Assembly: GCA_950097015.1 (NCBI GenBank)
Contig: CATNEN010000011.1
Span: forward strand, 5,952,001 to 6,016,000
Length of the DNA stretch: 64,000 bases
Source of the DNA: Macrostomum hystrix
Lineage: Eukaryota > Animalia > Platyhelminthes
Direction of reading: 5' to 3'
Made by a program: the position numbers and the translations under genes. Within the stretch, counting starts at the first letter, position 1, and each line of letters opens with the position of its first letter. Shown in pieces: positions 15,470 to 63,200 of this stretch. Below the pieces are notes generated by a model. It made no database searches. It was not told the origin of the DNA and was given only the letters and a program-made list of their open reading frames with translations.

Positions 15470-16670
15470 GAAGAGATGAGGCGGGGGAGAGATAAGACAG
15501 GGAAGAAATGAAGAAAGAGGAAAGATGGGACAGACGAGAGATAAGACAGGGAAGGGATGAGACGGGGAGAGATGAGACAGGGAGAGATGAGACAGGGACA
15601 GATGAGACAGGGGAGAGATGAGACAGGGGAGAGATGAGACAGACGAGAGATAAGACAGGGAAGGGATGAGACAGGGGAGAGATGAGACAGGGGAGAGATG
15701 AGACAGGGGAGAGATGAGACAGGGAAGGGATGAGACAGGGGAGAGATGAGACAGGGAAGGGATGAGACAGGGGAGAGATGAGACAGGGGAGAGATGAGAC
15801 AGAGGAGAGATGAGACAGGGGAGAGATGAGACAGGGGAGAGATAAGACAGGGGAGAGATAAGACAGGGAAGGGATAAGACAGGGGAGAGATAAGACAGGG
15901 AAGGGATAAGACAGGGGAGGGATGAGACAGGGGAGAGATGAGACAGGGGAGAGATGAGACAGAGGAGAGATGAGACACAGGAGAAATAAGACAGAGGAGA
16001 GATGAGACAGGGGAGAGATGAGAAAGAGTAGAGATGAGACAGGAGAGAGATAAGACAGGGAAGGGATGAGACAGGGAAGGGATGAGACAGGGAAGGGATG
16101 AGACAGGGGAGAGATGAGACAGGGGAGAGATGAGACAGGGAAGGGATGAGACAGGGGAGAGATGAGACAGGGAAGGGATGAGACAGGGGAGAGATGAGAC
16201 AGGGGAGAGATGAGACAGGGAAGGGATGAGACAGGGGAGAGATGAGACAGGGAAGGGATGAGACAGGGGAGAGATGAGACAGGGGAGGGATGAGACAGGG
16301 GAGAGATGAGACAGGGGAGAGATGAGACAGAGGAGAGATGAGACAGAGGAGAAATAAGACAGAGGAGAGATGAGACAGGGGAGAGATGAGAAAGAGTAGA
16401 GATGAGACAGGAGAGAGATAAGACAGGGAAGGGATGAGACAGGGGAGAGATGAGACAGAGGAGAGATGAGACAGGAAAGGGATGAGACAGGGAAGAGATG
16501 AGACAGGGAAGGGATGAGACAGGGGAGAGATGAGACAGGGAAGGGATGAGACAGGGGAGAGATGAGACAGGGAAGGGATGAGACAGGGGAGAGATGAGAC
16601 AGGGTAGAGATGAGACAGGGGAGAGATTAGACAGGGAAGGGATAAGACTGAGGAGAGATGAGATGAGAGA
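15470..16670. repeat. Purine-rich ~16-bp minisatellite (GAGATGAGACAGGGGA)
   Basis: Direct periodicity. Confidence 0.95.
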
Positions 16671-45728: not shown

Positions 45729-48700
45729 ATGTCTCTCATTGTGAAAGGCTTGACCGGCGGTCTAGTCCTACTGGTGCTGTCCAACCTGCTGCTGAAGTTT
45801 GTCCTGTACGACCTGGCCATGGTCACCTGGCACCCAGCAACGAAGGCTAACACGGCCGGCAAGCGAGTGCTCATCACCGGTTCGAGTCGCGGCATCGGCG
45901 AGGCTCTGGCCCTGCTGTACTCTGAGCTTGGCGCCCAGGTCACCCTGCACTCCAGGTACAATGGCACGGTTCAGAAGGTGAGCTGCAATCTATTTGATTT
46001 TATCCAGCTGAAACCTCACCGTTAGATTGGACATTAGCTAGATTATTGCGAAATCTCGTTCGGTTTTTCATGATTGCAAAATAGATCTCACCCATGAGAT
46101 CTCACCCATGAGATTTTTGTGTCTGTCAGAATCTGACCAATCTGATTTTTATGATTGCAAAATCTCACCCATGAGATCTCACCCATGAGATTTTTGTGTC
46201 TGTCAGAATCTGACCAATCTGATTTTTATGATTGCAAAATCTCACCCATGAGATCTCACCCATGAGATTTTTGTGTCTGTCAGAATCTGACCAATCCGAT
46301 TTTTATGATTGCAAAATCTCACCCATGAGATCTCACCCATGAGATTTTTGTGTCTGTCAGAATCTGACCAATCTGATTTTTATGATTGCAAAATCTCACC
46401 CATGAGATCTCACCCATGAGATTTTTGTGTCTGTCAGAATCTGACCAATCCGATTTTTATGATTGCAAAATCTCACCCATGAGATCTCACCCATGAGATT
46501 TTTGTGTCTGTCAGAATCTGACCAATCAGATTTTTATGATTGCTAAATCTCACCCATGAGATCTCACCCATGAGATCTCACCCATGAGATTTTTGTTTCT
46601 GTCAGAATCTGACCATTCAGATTTTTTATGATTGCAAAATCTCACCCATGAGATCTCACCCATGAGATTTTTGTGTCTGTCAGAATCTGACCAATCTGAT
46701 TTTTATGATTGCTAAATCTCACCCATGAGATCTCACCCATGAGATCTCACCCATGAGATTTTTGTTTCTGTCAGAATCTGACCATTCAGATTTTTTATGA
46801 TTGCAAAATCTCACCCTTGAGATCTCACCCATGAGATTTTTGTGTCTGCCAAATCTCACCAATGAGATTTTTTACGGTTGCGAAATCTTACCCATGAGAT
46901 TTTTTATGGCAAAATCTCACACTAAAATTTTTCTTGTGAGAGAATCTCATCGCCAGACTCTTCATGATTTCAAAATCTCATCGCCAGACTCTTCATGATT
47001 TCAAAATCTCATCGACAGACTCTTCGTGATTTCAAAATCTCATTGCCAGACTCTTCATGATTTCAAAATCTCATCGCTAGACTCTTCATGATTTCAAAAT
47101 CTCATCGCTAGACTCTTCATGATTTCAAAATCTCATCGACAGACTCTTCATGATTTCAAAATCTCATCGCTAGACTCTTCATGATTTCAAAATCTCATCG
47201 ACAGACTCTTCATGATTTCAAAATCTCATCGCCAGACTCTTCATGATTTCAAAATCTCATCGCTAGACTCTTCATGATTTCAAAATCTCATCGCCAGACT
47301 CTTCATGATTTCAAAATCCCATCGCCAGACTCTTCGTGATTTCAAAATCCCATCGCCAGACTCTTCATGATTTCAAAACCTCACTTTTTTACTTTTCGCA
47401 AGTACAAAATGTCACCGTTAAATTTTTTGTGAATGCAAAACTATCTTGTATTCATCCGACAAAAAATGTCCATTCGGTAGATTGACAACCTACAATGCTC
47501 TCTAGACCCCAGCTAGAATAGAGTGGGCTGAATCCTATTCGCTTGTATGAATGAATGGACTTTTATGCCCGGGAAACAATGCCGCTTATTTATTATTAGT
47601 GCATTGGTCTTTGCTGTCCGCCCGCCCTCTCTCCGTCTCTCCAACCTGAGTCCAACCTGAGTCCAACCTGAGTCCTGCCGCCATCTCAGCCTCTCTGGGG
47701 CCGTTGCAGACAATTTAGAAATCAACAATGCTAACTGCTTGATAATTGCTTCTTATAATCTTCTCTGCTTTCAAAGCAGGTTGGTTCTAACACTCTGAGT
47801 TTGCTCTATCACGCCATTCTTTCATTTTTTATTTTCTTTTATACCGGTGTCTTTTGTAAATAAGCGTGCGATAGAAAGAAGCAGGAAGAAATATTCTAAG
47901 AAAAAATATTTTATGTGACGAACGAGAATGCGATTCTAAAAAGCTAGTGAATTATTCTAAGAATGTTATAAGAATCAAATGAAAGATGATTAAGAAAATA
48001 ATGAGAAAAAAAGACATTTAATCAGCTTAAACATATTTAAGTACGTAACGTAACGTGAACTTGATTCTAAGAAACAAATAGACGATTCTTATAAAAACTA
48101 TACGATTCTGAGAAACAATCAGACGATTATGAGAAACAAGCAACCTTGTTTCTCAAATTTCTCAAAAGTTGTTAATTCTAAGAAAACAAATGAAAGGTTC
48201 TAGAAAAAATGTTAAGAGAATTGACGAGTTGATTTTGAAGAAGGCAGTTTTTAGCGATCAATCTGTAATTCTGTAATGAAATAGTAGATATCTACATTAC
48301 TTGTTGAACTGTGAGCCTTAAAAAGATAGATAAAAATAGGAGCTCCATATTAAAACAGCAAAGACAATAAGCCAATCGAAGAAGCAGCATAACAGAAAAA
48401 AATGTGCGACCCCATGCAGTGAAGTGGGCTGTCAAGTACAGCCACCCCCGGTGTGGGCGTCACGGCCCGTTGTTGATGCCCTTGTTTGTCAGTTGGTCGC
48501 CAGAAGAACCTCTCTCCCTCTCTCTCACCGCCTATCTAAATGTTTACTATCAGTGTCACCTGTGCTCTTAGGTAGTAACAGAGGTTATTCCTGATTTAAC
48601 TAACTCAATTCCGCGCTAAATACTGCGCGCCACGGCATTATAATTATTAATATATGGCCTACACAATGACCCACCATGACCCACCCACCATGACCCACCA

Positions 48701-51283: not shown

Positions 51284-54200
51284 TCACCGTCGGTCCCTGA
51301 ATATCTGGCGGAGAAGCCGCTCGATGCTCGTCAGACTCTCGGTGGTGGCCGCCTCCATGCTGAGCAGGCGAGTCTCCATTTCTGCCATGCGGCTGTCTGG
51401 CGAAGGTCCAGAACGCTCCTCCGACCGACGCCGCTCTTCTTGCCGGCGCTTCTTGCTCGACTTGCGCTTCGGCGGAGCCGGCGGTGGCTCCACTGCGGCG
51501 ACTGTGGTGGCCTCGGCTGTCGCGGCTTGCGGCTGCTGATGCGGCTCTGTTGGAGGCTGCACCGGCTGCATGATGGGGATTTCCTGGGAAGGCGAATAAC
51601 GTTTTTTTCTAAGAAACTGCTTAACCCAATGCTCAACGCTGTCGTTCATGGACACTGCCTAGCCTCTCCTCAATGCCCATTGGCTGCAGTCAAACCCCTT
51701 GCTTAACTCTAATTGGTTGCTGCCAAACTCTCCGTCTTAAAGCCAATTGGCTACTTCCAAACCCTCCACCTTAACTCCCATTGGCTACTTCCAAACCCTC
51801 CACCTTAACTCCAATTGGCTATTTCCAAACTCTCCACCTTAACTCCCATTGGCTATTTCCAAACTCTCCACCTTAACTCCCATTGGCTATTTCCAAACTC
51901 TCCACCTTAACTCCCATTGGCTACTTCCAATCCCTCCACCTTAAAGCCCATTGGCTACTTCCAATCCCTCCACCCTAAAGCCCATTGGCTGCTAAATCAA
52001 GCGCTGATTCTTCTCAACACGCAACGGGGGATCTAAAACTCAGTCAGTTACTCACCGGAACAACCTTCATCTTTAGTGGTGCCTCCGAATCTGCTTCCGT
52101 CACGGCTTGGTTCTCCCTCGCTGTCCCCGGCTTCTTGCAGTCCTCGTCGGGCCGGTGGCCGTGGCCGTGGTGCAACTCGTCCTCGAAGCGTTCGTCGATT
52201 CGGTCGCAGATTTTGTACAGGTCGTCTAGCCTGCAGATGGACAGCGGAGAGTGCGACGAATGCGACTAAATTTCGATTCTGAGAATTGCGTAAATCTTTA
52301 CACGTGTTCCTGTTACCATGGTTGCAACTTCAAAGCTAAAAAAATAAAGCTGTATAACAAAAGTTATTAGCGACCTTTTAAAAAGTAAACAAAAAAAACT
52401 TTTTTATTATAACAAGACAGATTTTAGACACCTGTTAGATACCTGTTAGTCATCTGTTAGACAGGGAGTGTCACCTGTTAGACAGGGAGTGTCACCTGTT
52501 AGACAGTGAGTGTCACCTGTTAGACAGGGAGTGTCACCTGTTAGACAGAGAGTGTCACCTGTTAGACAGGGAGTGTCACCTGTTAGACAGGGAGTGTCAC
52601 CTGTTAGACAGGGAGTGTCACCTGTTAGACAGGGAGTGTCACCTGTTAGACAGGGAGTGTCACCTGTTAGACAGGGAGTGTCACCTGTTAGACAGTGAGT
52701 GTCACCTGTTAGACAGGGAGTGTCACCTGTTAGACAGAGAGTGTCACCTGTTAGACAGAGAGTGTCACCTGTTAGACAGAGAGTGTCACCTGTTAGACAG
52801 GGAATGTCACCTGTTAGACAGAGAGTGTCACCTGTTAGACAGGGAGTGTCACCTGTTAGACAGTGAGTGTCACCTGTTAGACAGGGAGTGTCACCTGTTA
52901 GACAGAGAGTGTCACCTGTTAGACAGAGAGTGTCACCTGTTAGACAGAGAGTGTCACCTGTTAGACAGGGAATGTCACCTGTTAGACAGAGAGTGTCACC
53001 TGTTAGACAGAGAGTGTCACCTGTTAGACAGGGAATGTCCCCTGTTAGACAGAGAGTGTCACCTGTTAGACAGGGAGTGTCACCTGTTAGACAGAGAGTG
53101 TCACCTGTTAGACAGGGAATGTCACCTGTTAGACAGAGAGTGTCACCTGTTAGACAGAGAGTGTCACCTGTTAGACAGAGAGTGTCACCTGTTAGACAGG
53201 GAGTGTCACCTGTTAGACAGAGAGTGTCACCTGTTAGACAGGGAGTGTCACCTGTTAGACAGAGAGTGTCACCTGTTAGACAGAGAGTGTCACCTGTTAG
53301 ACAGAGAGTGTCACCTGTTAGACAGAGAGTGTCACCTCTTAGATATTGTTAGATTGTTATCTAATCAAGTGTGGCGCAAGGCTTGTTAAGTTAAAAGGCG
53401 CAGAATTCAAATTTTTAGCCACAGTCGTTGCCATAGCAACCAACCCGTCGCTAATGCCCATCATTCTGTTGCCAATCTGGGAGCGAAAGTCTTCCTCCTG
53501 ACGGCGGTGGACAAGGATCAGGCAGTGGGAGGCAAAGTTGCGCAATTCGTCGCCGCTCAGCTTGTCTGGCTCGTCTGCCGGTGTGTTTCGTTTTAAACAA
53601 GTTGTCAATTTTGTTTTAATTGTAATTTTGTCCTAATTCAAATGAATTTTTGCGACTAGATATTAAATGCTAAAAATAACTCGCATGTTGAAAGGTAAAC
53701 AAATACTTTATAATCTAGTAACGCTTTGATTAACACACACAAATAAATTAAAATAGAGCAAATAAAATACCAAGATCACTAGATAGAAAACTTAGATAGC
53801 TATAAAAACAGTGGAGTGCTGAATTGAAAAATTGTAGTGTAACTACGAGTAGAATAAGAAAAAATGTGAAAGCCAATCATTAGAATTCAACTCTTCGATA
53901 GAATTAACGTAAATCCTTCAAGACTATTCAGTAGCACATTAATCCACAAAAACCATTCTGTAGGATTAACGATAATAACCCCAACACCCTTCAGCAGGAT
54001 TAGCGATAATCCTTAAACACAATTCGGAAGGATTAACTTTAATTCTCCAACCCCTTCTGTAGAATTATTCCTTCAACACCGTCAGTAGGATTAACATTAA
54101 TTCTTCAACACCCTCTGTAGGATTAACATTAATCCTTCAACACCGTCAGTAGGATTAACATTAATCCTTCAACACCCTCTGTAGGATTAACATTAATCCT

Positions 54201-57200
54201 TCAACACCCTCTGTAGGATTAACATTAATTCTTCAACACCCTCTGTAGGATTAACATTAATCCTTCAACACCCTCTGTAGGATTAACATTAATCCTTCAA
54301 CACCCTCTGTAGGATTAACATTAATTCTTCAACACCCTCTGTAGGATTAACATTAATTCTTCAACACCCTCTGTAGGATTAACATTAATTCTTCAACACC
54401 CTCTGTAGGATTAACATTAATCCTTCAACACCCTCTGTAGGATTAACATTAATCCTTCAACACCCCTCTGTAGGATTAACATAAATCCTTCAACACCCCT
54501 CAGTAGGATTAACATGAATCCTTGAACACCCCTCTGTAGGATTAAAATTAATCCTTCAGCACCCCTCAGTAGGATTAACATTAATCCTTTAACACCCCTC
54601 AGTGGGATTATCATTAATCCTTCAACACCCCTCTGTAGGATTAGCATGAATCCTTCAACACCCGTCAGTAGGATTACATGAATCCTTCAACACACCTCTT
54701 TAGGATTAATATGAATCCTTCAACACCCTCTTTAGGATTAATATGAATCCTTCAACACCCGTCAGTAGGATTACATGAATCCTTCAACACCCCTCTTTAG
54801 GATTAACATGAATCCTTCAACACCCTCTTTAGGATTAATATGAATCCTTCAACACACCTCAGTAGGATTATCATTAATCCTTCAACACCCTCTTTAGGAT
54901 TAACATGAATCCTTCAACACCCTCTTTAGGATTAATATGAATCCTTCAACACACCTCAGTAGGATTAACATTAATCCTTTAACATCCCTCTGTAGGATTA
55001 ACATGAATCCTTCAACACCCTCTTTAGGATTAATATGAATCCTTCAACACACCTCAGTAGGATTAATATGAATCCTTCAACACACCTCAGTAGGATTAAT
55101 ATGAATCCTTCAACACACCTCAGTAGGATTAACATGAATCCTTCAACACCCTCTTTAGGATTAATATGAATCCTTCAACACACCTCAGTAGGATTAACAT
55201 TAATCCTTTAACATCCCTCTGTAGGATTAACATGAATCCTTCAACACCCTCTGTAGGATTAACATTAATCATTCAACACCCCTCTGTAGGATTAATATGA
55301 ATCCTTCAACACACCTCAGTAGTATTAATATGAATCCTTCAACACACCTCAGTAGGATTAACATGAATCCTTTAACATCCCTCTGTAGGATTATCATTAA
55401 TCCTTCAACATCCCTCAGTAGGATTAACATGAATCCTTTAACATCCCTCTGAAGGATTAACATGAATCCTTCAACACACCTCAGTAGGATTAACATGAAT
55501 CCTTTAACATCCCTCTGTAGGATTATCATTAATCCTTCAGCACCCCTCAGTAGGATTATCATTAATCCTCTAACATCCCTCTGTAGGATTATCATAGTCC
55601 TGGAATATTCAGTAGTCGAATAAAAGCAAATCCCAAGTGAGTAAAAACTACGTCAGTGGATCACGCGGCAAGAACAAAAAGGAAAAATTGAAATTAAATG
55701 TCTAGGAAAGTCACGCAAATGTTGCCCCAAGGGTGGCTAAGACGAGTTACCTGTTAACCACAGCTTTGACGCGAACTTCAATAGTCTGGGATTCTTTGTC
55801 TTTGAGCAGGGCCATGAGGCGCCTAGTCATCTCGGACTCAAAGCTGGCCAATTCGTGCTTTATGCTGGCCAAGATTTGAGCTGGGTTGGCAGTTCGCGGG
55901 ATTGAGCAAGCTTGTTGTTGGCTCACAGCATTCATTTTTAGACAGCTTTTTTGTTTATAAGTAGCAATATCAATAACGTCTGTTTCAGCTAACTGACTTT
56001 GATTACAAAAAATTATAGCAACTCGAAAAATTCTTTTTTTTCAGAATCATGGGTCTAGGGTCTTGGGTTCAGGGTCATGGGTTCAGGGTCATGGGTTCAG
56101 GGTCATGGGTTCAGGGTCATGGGTTCAGGGTCATGGGTTCAGGGTCATGGGTTCAGGGTCATGGGTTCAGGGTCTTGGGTTCAGGGTCATGGGTTCAGGG
56201 TCATGGGTTCAGGGTCATGGGTTCAGGGTCATGGGTTCAGGGTCATGGGTTCAGGGTCATGGGTTCAGGGTCATGGGTTCAGGGTCAAGGGTTTAGGGTC
56301 ATGGGTTCAGGGTCATGGGTTCAGGGTCATGGGTTCAGGGTCATGGGTTCAGGGTCAAGGGTTTAGGGTCATGGGTTCAGGGTCATGGGTTCAGGTCTCA
56401 CTGGTTCAGGGGTCGTTGGTTCAGGGGTCGTTGGTTCAGGGGTAATGGGTTCAGGGTCTTGGTTTCAGGGGTCATGGGTTCAGGGTCATGGGTTCAGGGT
56501 CATGGGTTCAGGGTCATGGGTTCAGGGTCATGGGTTCAGGGTCATGGGTTCAGGGTCATGGGTTTAGGGTCATGGGTTCAGGTCTCACTGGTTCAGGGGT
56601 CGTTGGTTCAGGGGTAATGGGTTCAGGGTCTTGGTTTCAGGGGTCATGGGTTCAGGGTCATGGGTTTAGGGTCATGGGTTCAGGGTCATGGGTTCAGGGT
56701 CATGGGTTCAGGGTCATGGGTTCAGGGTCATGGGTTCAGGGTCATGGGTTCAGGGTCATGGGTTCAGGGTCAAGGGTTTAGGGTCATGGGTTCAGGGTCA
56801 TGGGTTTAGGGTCATGGGTTCAGGGTCATGGGTTTAGGGTCATGGGTTCAGGGTCATTGTTTCAGGGTCATTGTTTTAGGGTCATTGTTTCAGGGTCATA
56901 ATTTCATTAGTTTTCATTACCATGTGAATTAGAATTTACAAACACGAAAGCCCTCACTCCTCACTCACCTTCTGGAGATTTCTTTCCGCACCTGCTCCTT
57001 TGAATCAGCATCCTGCCGAAGATGAAGATGTCCTCGAAGATCACAAATGGCAGGGCTAGCACCGGCTTATTGTGGTACTCGTGCACCAAAAAGTACATGT
57101 TGTACTTCCAGATCTCAATAGCATTCCGCTCGATCTCTTCGAAGATGTTGCTGAAAATTGTGGATGTTCCTTTTTGTCTCGATGAGATTTCAAAATTTCT

Positions 57201-60200
57201 CAATGAGATTTGAATCTTTTACAATAACATTTCTTAAGTGTCTGATTGAGATTTGAGAGTGTCTCAATGAGATTTGAGAGTGTCTCAGTGAGATTTGTGA
57301 GTGTCTCAATGAGATTTGAGAGTGTCTCAGTGAGATTTGAGAGTGTCTCAATAAGATTTGTGAGTGTCTCAAAGAGATTTGAGAGTGTCTCAGTGAGATT
57401 TGTGAGTTTCTTAATGAGATTTGAGAGTGTCTCAACGAGATTAGTTTACTCATTGACGCACCTGAAGATGGCAATCAGCAGGTTCAGCAGCAGGATGTCA
57501 ACAGCCATGAGGTAGACAGCAAACAGGATGAGCACAAGGGCATTGGCTGTTGGACAAGGATTTCCTGAGCTGTCTACCGTGCTGTTACCAGAGCAACCGG
57601 TTGGCGGGTCGGCTGCAAAGCGCGTTTAAATAGTGTTATTTTGATACAAAACAGTCACTAGCAATGCTAAAATCTTATTGAATACTTTGACTGGGCAAAA
57701 AGCTCTGTCAAACAGGTTAGCAATCATGTCTAACAGGTTAGCAATCATGTCTAACAGGTTAGCAATCATGTCTAACAGGTTATCTGTCATATCTAACAGG
57801 TTAACAATCATCTCTAACAGGTTAACAGTCATTCCTAACAGGTTAACAATCATGTCTAACAGGTTAGCAATCATGTCTAACAGGTTAACAATCATGTCTA
57901 ACAGGTTAGCAATCATGTCTAACAGGTTAACAATCATGTCGAACAGGTAATCTGTCATGTCTAACAGGTTAACAATCATGTCTAACAGGTTAACAATCAT
58001 TTCTAACAGGTTAACAATCATGTCTAACATGTTATCAGTCATATCTAACAGTTCCCTCACCTTCCACAGTCTCAATGTACAGCTGGCCGTACATTTGCCA
58101 GTACGGATAGTACACAATGTCCTCAAAAACCCTAGCCAAAAACTGTCTATTGGGATAGAGCAGTGCTTGGGCCGCAACGCCATAGGTTAGCAGAGGAACG
58201 AGTAGAATGCTCAGATAGAACAGCAGCTCCTTCACCATCTTGTTGATCATCACTAGCTTTGGACCGAGATAGCTGTTCACGTAGTAGAGTCTGACGGTTT
58301 TTCATTTGATTGTATGTTGAATTAAAATTGCTGACCGTTGATACCACTTGAACTAATGCGATCGAAATTTAAGTACCACAAATTGTTTCAATTGAAAACA
58401 GGGACAGACGATCGAGAAAGGGAGAGTGGGCGTGTGACGGAGAGAGGGAAGGAGGGAAAGAGCGAGAGGGATACAGGGAGAGATGAAGAGAACAAGAGGG
58501 AGAGAGGGAGAGGGAGAGAGGAGAGAGGACACTGCCCATTTAATTTCAAAAAGAGGGAAAGAGGGAGAGATAGGGACAGAGGGAGAGATAGGGACAGAGG
58601 GAGAGATAGGGACAGAGGGAGAGATAGGGACAGAGGGAGAGATAGGGACAGAGGGAGAGATAGGGACAGAGGGAGAGATAGGGACAGAGGGAGAGATAGG
58701 GGCAGAGGGAGAGATAGGGGCAGAGGGAGAGATAGGGACAGAGGGAGAGATAGGGACAGAGGGAGAGATAGGGACAGAGGGAGAGATAGGGACAGAGGGA
58801 GAGATAGGGACAGAGGGAGAGATAGGGACAGAGGGAGAGATAGGGACAGAGGGAGAGATAGGGGCAGAGGGAGAGATAGGGGCAGAGGGAGAGATAGGGA
58901 CAGAGGGAGAGATAGGGGCAGAGGGAGAGATAGGGACAGAGGGAGAGATAGGGGCAGAGGGAGAGATAGGGACAGAGGGAGAGATAGGGGCAGAGGGAGA
59001 GATAGGGGCAGAGGGAGAGATAGGGGCAGAGGGAGAGATAGGGACAGAGGGAGAGATAGGGGCAGAGGGAGAGATAGGGGCAGAGGGAGAGATAGGGACA
59101 GAGGGAGAGATAGGGAGCGAGGGAGAGATAGGGAGAGAGGGAGAGATAGGGACAGAGGGAGAGATAGGGACAGAGGGAGAGATAGGGACAGAGGGAGAGA
59201 GAGAGGGAGAGGGACAGGGACAGAATAAAAGAAGGATAGAGAGGGAGAGGGAGAGGGAGAGAGGAAGAGAGAGGGAGAGAGGGAGAGAGGAAGAGAGAGG
59301 GAGAGGGATAGATAAAGTGGCAGAGCAAGGGAGAAATGAGCAATTAGGGGAAAAGTGCAAGTTAATATAGTCTCGGGCACTCCAAATGCGTTTCTCTAAT
59401 TGGATTTTCCTCCAACCAATCAGCAGGTCGCAGGTCGCACCTGAACACTCTCAGGTAGAAGAACACGCCGCCAAGAATATAGCAGGTGCGTACACCAAGG
59501 AAGATGGCATTTGTGCTCTCTGGTATTCTCATAAACATGCTCAGCAGGGTGAGCAGTATTGTGAGCAGATCTAGCCGGTTCCACACTGAGAAGCTCCACC
59601 AGTCGTGCAGTTTCTCTCGCACAGTGTCGGCTTTGGATGAGAACATCTGCGTCGGTTTGGTCGGAAGAGAATTAATTTAGTTAGCAATTTGTTCAATTGC
59701 CTACTGACAGTAGGAGTATTCGAATAAACTAACCTCTCGAACTTCGTCCACAACCATGATCCAGATCCAGGCCATGATGAGCCATTCCAGCCAAGACATG
59801 TAGGCTTGCTTCAGGCCGAACAGGATAAAATAGGAGTAGAAGACTAGGAAGGCCACGTAGCAGATCTGTGGGTGGCGAAGTGCAGGGAATCTAACTGTTT
59901 TAGTCCAAGGAAAAATCCGCGCGACTTAGATTATTTAGATTGACGAATGCGTGCGATTCTAGCTGCGATTCCTGCTTCGATTCATCCTTTGATGCTGGCT
60001 ACGATTCCTGCTTTAGTTCTAGCTGCGATTCCTCCTTTGGTGCTAGCTACAATTCTTGCTTTGATTCTAGCTACGATTCCTGCACTGGTTCTAGCTACGA
60101 TTCCTGCTTCGATTCTAGCTACGATTCCTGCTATGGTTCTAGCTACGATTCCTTCTTTGATGCTAGCTATGATTCTTGCTTCGATTCTAGCTACGATACC

Positions 60201-63200
60201 TGCTTCGATTCTAACTACGATTCCTGCACTGGTCCTAACTACGATCCCTGCTTCGATTCTAGCTACGATTCCTGCTATGGTTCTAGCTACAATACCTCCT
60301 TTGATGCTAGCTACGATTCTTGCTTCGATTCTAGCTACGATTCCTGCTTTGATATAGCTATGATTCCTGCACTGGTTCTTGCTACGATAGCTGCTTCGAT
60401 TCTAACTACGATTCCTGCTCTGGTTCTAGCAACGATTCCTGCTTCAATTCTAACTACGATTCCTGCTTCGATTCTAACTACGATTTCTGCTTCGATTCTA
60501 GCTACGATTCCTGCTCTGGTTCTAGCAACGATTCCTGCTTCAATTCTAACTACGATTCCTGCTTCGATTCTAACTACGATTTCTGCTTCGATTCTAGCTA
60601 CGATTCCTGCTCTGGTTCTAGCAACGATTCCTGCTTCAATTCTAACTACGATTCCTGCTTCGATTCTAACTACGATTCCTGCTTCAATTCTAGCTACGAT
60701 TCCTGCTCTGGTTCTAGCAACGATTCCTGCTTCAATTCTAACTATGATTCCTGCTTTGATATAGCTTTGATTCCTGCACTGGTTCTAGCTACGATTCCTG
60801 CTTCGATCAGAGACCCAGCGGCTACTCACCGCGTTGGCAAAGAACTTGGTGACAGGCGCCGTGTAGAAGATCTTGGCCTTGCAGCGCATCCTGGCGCAGC
60901 AGCCGGCGTTCTTGTTCTCGCCCAGCTCCTCCTCGATCGCGCCGGGCTCTGCTTGAACTACTCGGTCGGAGGGCAGCAGGAAGGGCAGGCAGACGCAAGC
61001 CAGGATGCGCATGTTGGAGGTGCCGTGCATTAGACCGTTTAGCCAGCGCCTGGTGATGCTGTTCTGGCTGCTGTTGCAGGCCAGAAACCTGCGGATTAGG
61101 GCATTTTGGGATTATCGTCTATGCAAATTATGACTGATGGTTTTAACTCGAGCTATCAACGTATTCATGTGTCACTTGGATTTTTTTATATTGGATTACT
61201 GGAATTATCGACTGTCATTCTATCGGATAATCCGACTATTGTCTATCAAAATATTGGACTTTCGACTGTCACAACCGGATTATCGACTGTCATGATCGGA
61301 TTATCGACTGTCATGATCGGATTATCGACTGTCATGATCGGATTATCAACTGTCATGATCGGATTATCGACTGTCATGATCGGATTATCGACTGTCATGA
61401 TCGGATTATCGACTGTCATGATCGGATTATCGACTGTCAAAACTGTACCGACTGTCATAATCGAATTATCGACTTTCATAATCGGATTATTGACTGCCTA
61501 ATCGGTTTATTGACTGCCTAATCGGATTATTGACTGTCTAATCGGATTATTGACTGTCTAATCGGATTATTGACTGCCTAATCGGATTATTGACTGCCTA
61601 ATCGGATTATTGACTGTCTAATCGGATTATTGACTGTCTAATCGGATTATCTACCGCGAAACTCACCTTTTGCAGTTGGCACTCGCAGCCAGCTCCAGGC
61701 AGTTGAAGTTGCCGAACGCGTCAACAGGATTCTCTATGAGCAGTTCGGCCTTGCTGTGATCCACCGTCTGGGACTCCTCGATCACTCTGGTCGACAGTTC
61801 CTCGAATTCGGCTTTGAATCCGATCAGCAGCCGACGGCGCGCATCCTCGTGGCTTGGCAGGGACTTCGCCATCTCGTCGAGCACTTTGCAGGCGGCGAGG
61901 GCCAGCGGGACGGCTTCGTCCGTGCGCTCCCATAGGAATCGAGCCATGACCTGCTTGCCGAACAGCACCGCCCAGAAGAACAGCTGGTTGAAGGGCTTGT
62001 CCAGTGGCTTGCTGCTTGCCAGCTGCTCCTCCTCCGGCAGCATGTCGATGTCCTCGTCCATGTCGGGCGAGTGGAACTTGCCGATCAGCTGCCGGAGCAG
62101 CAGCCGGATGTTGCTGAGGCGAACTTGCTCGGTGACCTTGCAGCGAGCCTTGCTGGTCAGCAGCTTGCGGATCTGAGGATGGAAATAGTTTGAGAATTTC
62201 CATGTTCCCAATCCCAATATATCCCATTCTCTGTTATCCCACTTTCTCTTATCCCATTCGCTATGGGATGGGATTATCCCATTCTCAATTATCCCATTCT
62301 CTATTATACATTTCTCAATTATCCCATTCTCTATTATCCCATTCAATTATCCCATTCTTAATTATCCCATTCTCAATTATCCCATTCTCTATTATCCCAT
62401 TCTTAATTATCCCATTCTCAATTATCCCATTCTCTATTATCCCATTCTTAATTATCCCATTCTCAATTATCCCATTCTCTATTATCCCATTCTTAATTAT
62501 CCCATTCTCAATTATCCAATTCTCAATTATCCTATTCTCAATTATCCAATTCTCTATTATCCCATTCTAAATTATCCCATTCACAATAATTCCATAATCT
62601 ACGAGCGGATGATCGCACCCAAAAGTAATTGATCCCACCTGTACAGTAGCTGGGTTTTTGTCTCCGGGCTTCAGCCGAGCTCTGTACAGATCCCTTAGGC
62701 GGCCGACCGTGAGAAATTCTCTCATGATGAGGCCGTTTCTAAGAAACAGCTTGACGAATTCAATTTTATCCTCAACGATGGCTTGCAGGGTGAACAGCTC
62801 CAGGTTTGCCGTGTCCCACTGCAGCTCCTCCGTGAATATTTTCTCTGCGGCAATGTCCGGCCGGTTCCAGGTGAGCGAGAGACTGAGCTGGCGCTTGTAG
62901 TCAGACATCTGCCTGGCATCCATGACTGGTTGGTTTCGGGGGAAAGACGGAAATTTACTTCGGGATAATAGCGGAACTAGTTTCGTTTTCGGAAATCCTC
63001 AGTTTCGGAAATCCCCAGTTTCGGAAATCCTCAGTTTCGGGAATCCTCAGTTTCGGAAATCCTCAGTTTCGGAAACCCCCAGTTTAGGAAATCCTCATTT
63101 TCGGAAACCCTCATTTTCAAAAGTCCTCATTTTCGGAAATCCTCATTTTTCCGAAATCCTCAGCTTCGGGAGTCTCGAAATTTTGTGACATTTTAGGTGG

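Follow-up and report, generated by a model that had tools for sequence, protein, structure and literature searches.

On the minus strand of a 64,000-nucleotide (nt) stretch of the Macrostomum hystrix genome (assembly GCA_950097015.1, contig CATNEN010000011.1, positions 5,952,001 to 6,016,000; hereafter the window) lies a TRPM channel gene, the 3′ two-thirds of which are present. Between the exon that encodes the TRP helix and the next constitutive exon, the gene contains two neighbouring exons of identical length, here called A and B. Our analysis leads us to propose, with a probability of roughly 0.75, that A and B form a conserved, mutually exclusive exon pair of Macrostomum TRPM, each encoding its own version of the rib helix.

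The assignment of the gene to TRPM, made in a preliminary description of this DNA, is borne out by two results. PF25508 matches the upstream exons at 61666-62346 and 62570-62923 (1.2e-23 and 2.6e-15, respectively), indicating that the TRPM homology region/TRPM2-like domain is present, and the TRP exon is 83% identical to a TRPM of Macrostomum lignano, its best match in the representative protein library. The synonymous divergence of the window gene from M. lignano is about 1. Within the TRP exon, the stretch IWKYNMYFLV represents the TRP helix (WK[FY]xxY) that follows S6, and the orthologue P0151 aligns this stretch with the TRP helix of the solved TRPM2, TRPM3 and TRPM8. The exons on which the argument rests are the following, where L001 and L002 denote two M. 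lignano loci described below.

56969-57150, minus strand: constitutive exon encoding the TRP helix; 182 nt, phase 1 out; 82% amino acid identity to L001 15222-15403
55751-55880, minus strand: exon A, putative rib-helix exon of the ancestral type; 130 nt, phase 1 in and phase 2 out; AG/GT borders
53445-53574, minus strand: exon B, putative Macrostomum-specific rib-helix exon; 130 nt, phases as in exon A; AG/GT borders
52056-52230, minus strand: constitutive downstream exon (LDDLYKICDRIDERF...); 175 nt; 87% amino acid identity to L001; joined to B in contigs
51284-51583, minus strand: last coding exon, with the stop codon; contains a C-terminal heptad-like segment (RMAEMETRLLSMEAATTESLTSIERLLRQIF) that is conserved in L001 and L002

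The reading frame admits exactly one of the two exons

The TRP exon ends at 56969 with ...TCTCCAGAAG and its 3′ border reads ...CCAGAAG/GTGAGT. Exon A is bordered by cccag/CTCAAA and TAACAG/gtaact and exon B by ggcag/ACGAGC and CGACGG/gttggt, while the downstream exon begins at 52230 (ctgcag/GCTAGA) and opens with GCTAGACGAC.... The coordinates, 130-nt lengths, AG/GT borders and phases of A and B are exactly those given in the preliminary description. Because both exons are of 3n+1 length and share the same phases, a full-length channel can be encoded only by transcripts that contain exactly one of them. A frame check confined to this part of the gene confirmed the earlier statement that both exons, or neither, break the frame between 56969 and 52230: the upstream exon joined through A or through B to the downstream exon remains open, inclusion of A and B together leads to a stop inside B, and direct joining of the upstream and downstream exons leads to a stop at once. 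When the 4.7-kilobase (kb) interval was searched outside the satellites for frame-compatible AG...GT candidates, the open stretches of A and B were the only ones found.

The B form is spliced in RNA

RNA data came from a sediment metatranscriptome (X1) and from four runs of one study (X2-X5). Reads of X1-X4 were placed on the repeat-free stretch 53350-53900 around exon B. X2, X3 and X4 each yielded one contig over exon B (4169, 3651 and 4157 nt, respectively, at a word depth of 22-26), and no contig on this stretch was obtained from X1. The three contigs span just 53444-53576 of the stretch, with zero mismatches, and their loose ends place uniquely at 52200-52229 and 56971-57000. They thus represent near full-length mRNAs in which 56969 is joined to 53574 and 53445 to 52230 and A is skipped, which are the two B junctions that the preliminary description had proposed for checking. 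Since the contigs are spliced at 53445, the unusual GTTGGT donor of exon B is in use.

Exon A was followed up by a search with 21 words sampled from the exon and 50 nt on either side (55701-55930), for which an exon-only copy would give a share of about 0.5. The shares recovered were 0.43 in X1, 1.00 in X2, 0.76 in X3, 0.62 in X4 and 0.19 in X5. All 21 of the sampled words, intron flanks included, occur in X2; the flanks of B are without a contig in X2-X4. Contigs lose rare variants, among which transcripts with both A and B might fall. Metagenome scans with a 30-nt piece of exon A and with a back-translated A alignment were both blank, and a search for encoding contigs with the 62-residue open reading frame around exon A and with the UniRef-only models P0001-P0003 found nothing.

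Both exons are kept in Macrostomum lignano

To reach related genes, the TRP exon was compared with the representative library, one of the M. lignano models so obtained was used in a word search, and the resulting proteins PAA88976 and PAA71725 led to the loci L001 and L002. In both loci the gene order is that of the window, with the TRP exon followed by an A-like exon, a B-like exon and the downstream exon, all with AG/GT borders.

L001 16192-16321: A-type exon, 130 nt
L001 16834-16969: B-type exon, 136 nt
L002 16616-16748: A-type exon, 133 nt
L002 17500-17638: B-type exon, 139 nt

The lengths of A and B are 3n+1 in all six exons of the three genes (130/130, 130/136 and 133/139). These data demonstrate that use of one exon or the other is imposed by the reading frame, a rule that has been conserved across the three genes. 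At the DNA level, the window resembles L001 and L002 only in exons, and A and B stand out in the same manner as the constitutive exons. At the protein level, exon A is 74% identical to its L001 copy and 67% to its L002 copy, with corresponding values for exon B of 61% and 42%.

The ratio of nonsynonymous to synonymous divergence (dN/dS), a test likewise proposed in the preliminary description, is 0.07-0.10 for exon A with saturated dS, compared to 0.11-0.24 for the TRP exon. Exon B has dN values of 0.28-0.62 with saturated dS; in the comparison of the window with L001 (dN 0.28), saturation of dS precludes an estimate, and the sole defined ratio is 0.38 (window versus L002). The substitution pattern thus indicates that exon A is under strong purifying selection. 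The frame, borders and length class of A have remained intact despite high divergence, which argues that A is not a dead exon.

All M. lignano protein models that are intact across the region use B, among them PAA88976 and PAA71725, which are B-type. Two UniProt entries, A0A1I8F1M8 (P0002) and A0A1I8IVG5 (P0201), were considered as true isoforms containing both A and B and were rejected, as in each the frame is mended by reading intron sequence, either by read-through of the A donor or by shifted splice sites; they are likely prediction artefacts. When A0A1I8F1M8 (region 59-260) was used for a word search, the only matches were frameshifted models from M. lignano, none of them an A-only isoform.

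Exons A and B would encode alternative rib helices

By position, the element swapped between A and B appears to be the roughly 40-residue rib helix that follows the TRP helix. The residue-level placement derives from alignment offsets to other TRPMs, as the protein is known here from its sequence alone. Against a profile of the post-TRP region of 21 diverse TRPMs, exon A scores 27.9 bits and the L002 A copy 32.8 bits, and none of 2000 shuffles reaches either value. Exon B scores about 0 bits against the same profile, and the L002 B copy 4.9 bits, a value reached by 12 of 2000 shuffles. A profile that includes A matches residues 1124-1166 of zebrafish TRPM2 (E 2.5e-8); with the TRP helix as anchor, the alignment of P0151, a B isoform, also runs across these TRPM2 residues and continues through TRPM3. 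The A or B peptide alone finds no TRPM among the PDB sequences, and B plus the downstream exon of P0151 gives only chance matches there, with no TRPM unless the TRP anchor is included.

Structure prediction yields a single long helix for each peptide, spanning residues 2-41 in A (predicted local distance difference test score, pLDDT, 90.9) and residues 7-41 in B (pLDDT 91.3), which lends weak support, as models of this kind frequently render short peptides as helices. The two versions differ in composition. The net charge of the A copies in the three genes is +2, +2 and +4 and that of the B copies -3, -1 and 0; the three A copies contain no cysteine, while each B copy contains one or two.

In rabbit TRPM3 the rib helix comprises residues 1163-1192, and a charged interface between it and MHR1/2 sets activation by heat and agonist (PMC12819145). 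The preliminary description had located the segment in the rib-helix/coiled-coil region and spoken of swapped assembly or gating helices. The first half of each statement fits, since the segment directly follows the TRP helix, maps to the rib helix and is aptly termed a gating or coupling helix. The second half fits less well: the A and B forms share the C-terminal segment of heptad-like character, which belongs to the last exon, so the swap concerns the coupling helix and not the putative coiled coil. The coiled-coil reading of this last-exon segment is based on inspection and on a UniRef name; Pfam gave no match to it.

Origin of the pair

The preliminary description had also stated that A and B align without gaps and suggested that they stem from an old exon duplication. 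A gapless alignment does exist, but it is weak, with 6 of 42 residues identical (14%), a BLOSUM62 sum of -5 and a shuffle p of about 0.02-0.04. When three-sequence profiles of A and B were compared with hhalign, the result was P 0.2, with only ELxxF in common. A profile of A together with the 21 TRPMs, by contrast, matches B over 33 columns, residues 9-41 to residues 9-41 and hence in exact register, with P 5.4e-4. Because of this in-register match and of the shared position, phase and length class, tandem duplication is the more likely origin of the pair, by about three to one over the alternative, and the earlier claim appears plausible despite its weak backing from direct comparison of the two sequences.

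B-type sequence turned up in Macrostomum only, in comparisons that covered about 237 TRPMs and the loci of Owenia and Lingula. Judged from these comparisons, exon A represents the ancestral TRPM type and exon B is specific to the lineage. The boundaries of the rib-helix exon are the same in Owenia and Lingula, and Owenia has a single such exon; a match of the B profile at 46638-46697 of the Owenia locus (L003) was dismissed as chance, as it does not correspond to a helix-like exon.

In the TRPM gene of Lingula anatina (XP_023931219.1, LFEI02000190.1; L004), the intron that follows the rib-helix exon contains a second copy of this exon, 1.5 kb downstream of the first and absent from the annotation. 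The copies, at L004 13978-14113 (136 nt) and 15643-15781 (139 nt), are both of 3n+1 length, with the same phases and AG/GT borders. Their peptides (...ERQRRALAGFEKEC... and ...EHQRRMLGAFEKDS...) are 43% identical over 28 amino acids and clearly homologous. This tandem copy indicates that the rib-helix exon does duplicate in tandem, and the Lingula pair constitutes a candidate for mutually exclusive exons at the same position as the Macrostomum pair. The Macrostomum B profile does not match the second Lingula copy.

Introns, satellites and splice signals

The introns around the two exons are filled to a large extent by satellite arrays identified with Tandem Repeats Finder (TRF).

56047-56899, no strand: array of 60 copies of a 14-base-pair (bp) unit (TRF), filling the intron between the TRP exon and exon A
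54069-55595, no strand: array of 47 copies of a 33-bp unit (TRF), in the intron between A and B
52449-53343, no strand: array of 43 copies of a 21-bp unit (TRF), in the intron between B and the downstream exon
53427-53444, minus strand: donor of exon B (GTTGGTTGC), unusual and weak, with about 18 conserved intronic nt

In the 3′ part of the gene every intron contains a separate tandem array; the repeat units measure 34, 21, 33, 14 and 21/42 bp at 51702-51990, 52449-53343, 54069-55595, 56047-56899 and 57175-57442, respectively. The introns at matching places in M. lignano are short, at 250-1000 nt. The B-type exon of L001 has the identical donor GTTGGTTG, and the blastn block between the window and L001 runs 18 nt beyond it (L001 16970-16987). 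These roughly 18 nt can be aligned between the window and M. lignano although the introns are otherwise unalignable, and may represent a splicing signal behind the weak donor. Pairing between introns and a hairpin at the B donor were sought as explanations of exon choice. RNAduplex found no significant pairing between the non-satellite intron segments of the window (z -2.0 to +0.7), and no hairpin at the donor was significant or conserved.

Discussion

Several observations weigh against A and B being a mutually exclusive pair in which each exon is used. No read or contig carrying an A junction (56969 to 55880 or 55751 to 52230) was obtained, read placement having been made on the B stretch and A having been covered by word shares, which are the RNA data on this exon. 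The RNA evidence for B derives entirely from a single study. The full share of A and its flanks in X2 is more readily explained by unspliced RNA, or by a longer form that contains A, than by a cleanly spliced A exon. An A-only protein model is absent from the collections searched, the pairwise similarity of A and B is weak, and the window lacks significant pairing between its introns. Of the mutual exclusivity claimed earlier, what stands is that the exon lengths force the use of one or the other and that the B form is spliced in RNA; exon A was found joined to its neighbours in no transcript obtained.

The alternatives concern how A is used and where B came from. That A is a dead relic, replaced by B in Macrostomum and spliced into no mRNA, would agree with the presence of B in every transcript contig and in every usable protein model. 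We consider this highly improbable, given that A has an open frame, AG/GT borders and 67-74% amino acid identity despite saturated synonymous sites, in introns that are themselves unalignable, with a dN/dS as low as or below that of the neighbouring TRP exon; moreover, the X1 word share of 0.43 is close to the exon-sized share of the sampled region. Somewhat less remote, yet still improbable, is the use of A as an alternative last exon or retained region, giving a channel that ends before the C-terminal coiled coil. Reading past the A donor does stop immediately (AGG TAA, 55749-55747), and X2 has every sampled word of A and both flanks, with the B flanks lacking a contig. This immediate stop is not conserved, however, as the frame stays open for 7 more codons in L001 and for much longer in L002, and nothing can be concluded from a gap in contig coverage. 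All three genes retain the 3n+1 length and place the GT donor at the same codon position, and since these properties matter only if A is spliced to the downstream exon, they argue against a terminal role.

A third alternative retains mutual exclusivity and holds that B was recruited from unrelated intron sequence, its length, phase and helicity having converged on those of A. This would account for the poor hhalign result between the A and B profiles, with ELxxF as the sole shared motif, for the score of B of about 0 bits against the TRPM profile and for the failure of B plus the downstream exon to match any TRPM in the PDB. We regard it as unlikely, though as a more serious contender than the two preceding alternatives. 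Position and phase are the same and length is near-identical in three genes, the L002 B copy does reach 4.9 bits (12 of 2000 shuffles) with collinear pieces, the profile-profile match lies in exact register, and the homologous tandem copy in Lingula TRPM shows that the rib-helix exon duplicates.

Under the preferred reading, a mutually exclusive A/B pair, transcripts with both exons or neither would meet an early stop and presumably be lost to nonsense-mediated decay. B, the form in the transcript contigs of three runs, is the more acidic, cysteine-bearing version, with a weak but conserved donor. A would most likely be used in a minority of cells, stages or conditions, because the ancestral A type has been kept under strong purifying selection. 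The pair would have originated by tandem exon duplication, and the two helices would give channels that differ in how the cytoplasmic domain is coupled to the pore. A broader picture, which we offer tentatively, is that Macrostomum TRPM swaps its whole rib helix, with an acidic derived version as the default and a basic ancestral version for particular cells or conditions, and that such swapping may have an old origin in spiralians or have recurred there, given the similar unannotated second copy in Lingula.

Mutually exclusive exons are common in channel genes; known pairs include those of CaV, NaV and FGFR2 (IIIb/IIIc). Drosophila TrpA1 has two mutually exclusive sites, with choices at exon 1 and at exon 10 (PMC11471635). 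As in pairs of the TrpA1 type, which the reading frame likewise enforces, the Macrostomum exons are adjacent, share a phase, have near-equal lengths, would be used one per transcript and swap a single channel module. They depart from such pairs in that the TRPM rib helix is what is exchanged, its two versions have diverged much further than is typical (14% identity), and the ancestral-type exon appears to be the minor one, the derived exon being the one seen in RNA so far. These three features, divergence, module and the derived exon in RNA, are what is unusual here. Comparison to Dscam1-type clusters with docking sites and selectors reveals a different arrangement, with two exons only, exclusivity arising from the frame and no significant intron pairing in the window. 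With respect to solved TRPMs, the A profile and TRP-anchored B both cover the rib helix of zebrafish TRPM2 (6DRJ/6DRK) and both are predicted to be helical, whereas Macrostomum B alone has no detectable sequence match to them. The tandem exon of Lingula resembles the Macrostomum pair in gene position, phases and the 3n+1 length of both copies, but the Lingula copies, unlike A and B, are visibly similar to each other.

In the literature searched, we found no TRPM exon pair at the rib-helix position; the papers found there that mention TRPM alongside mutual exclusivity of exons deal with first exons or with generic classes of splicing. Equal-length NCBI isoforms with swapped segments occur in two scallops (P0050/P0210 and P0160/P0213), where the segment lies before S1 at about residues 808-856, and isoforms of Mytilus californianus (P0164 cluster) swap the TRP-helix exon and a C-terminal segment (1231-1297). 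Exon swapping thus seems to be common in annotations of invertebrate TRPM genes.

For sequence collections, our findings mean that two UniProt M. lignano entries contain both exons through intron read-through and that the NCBI M. lignano models lack exon A, both of which call for correction. Unannotated duplication of the rib-helix exon may also be wider in spiralians, as the Lingula gene suggests. The rib helix, which in solved TRPMs extends through the cytoplasmic domain, connects the large cytoplasmic sensor of these channels mechanically to the pore. Macrostomum would possess two very different rib helices in an otherwise identical channel, both apparently maintained by selection in the three genes of the two species and consistently different in net charge. 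If true, the A/B pair would be a natural swap of a gating module.

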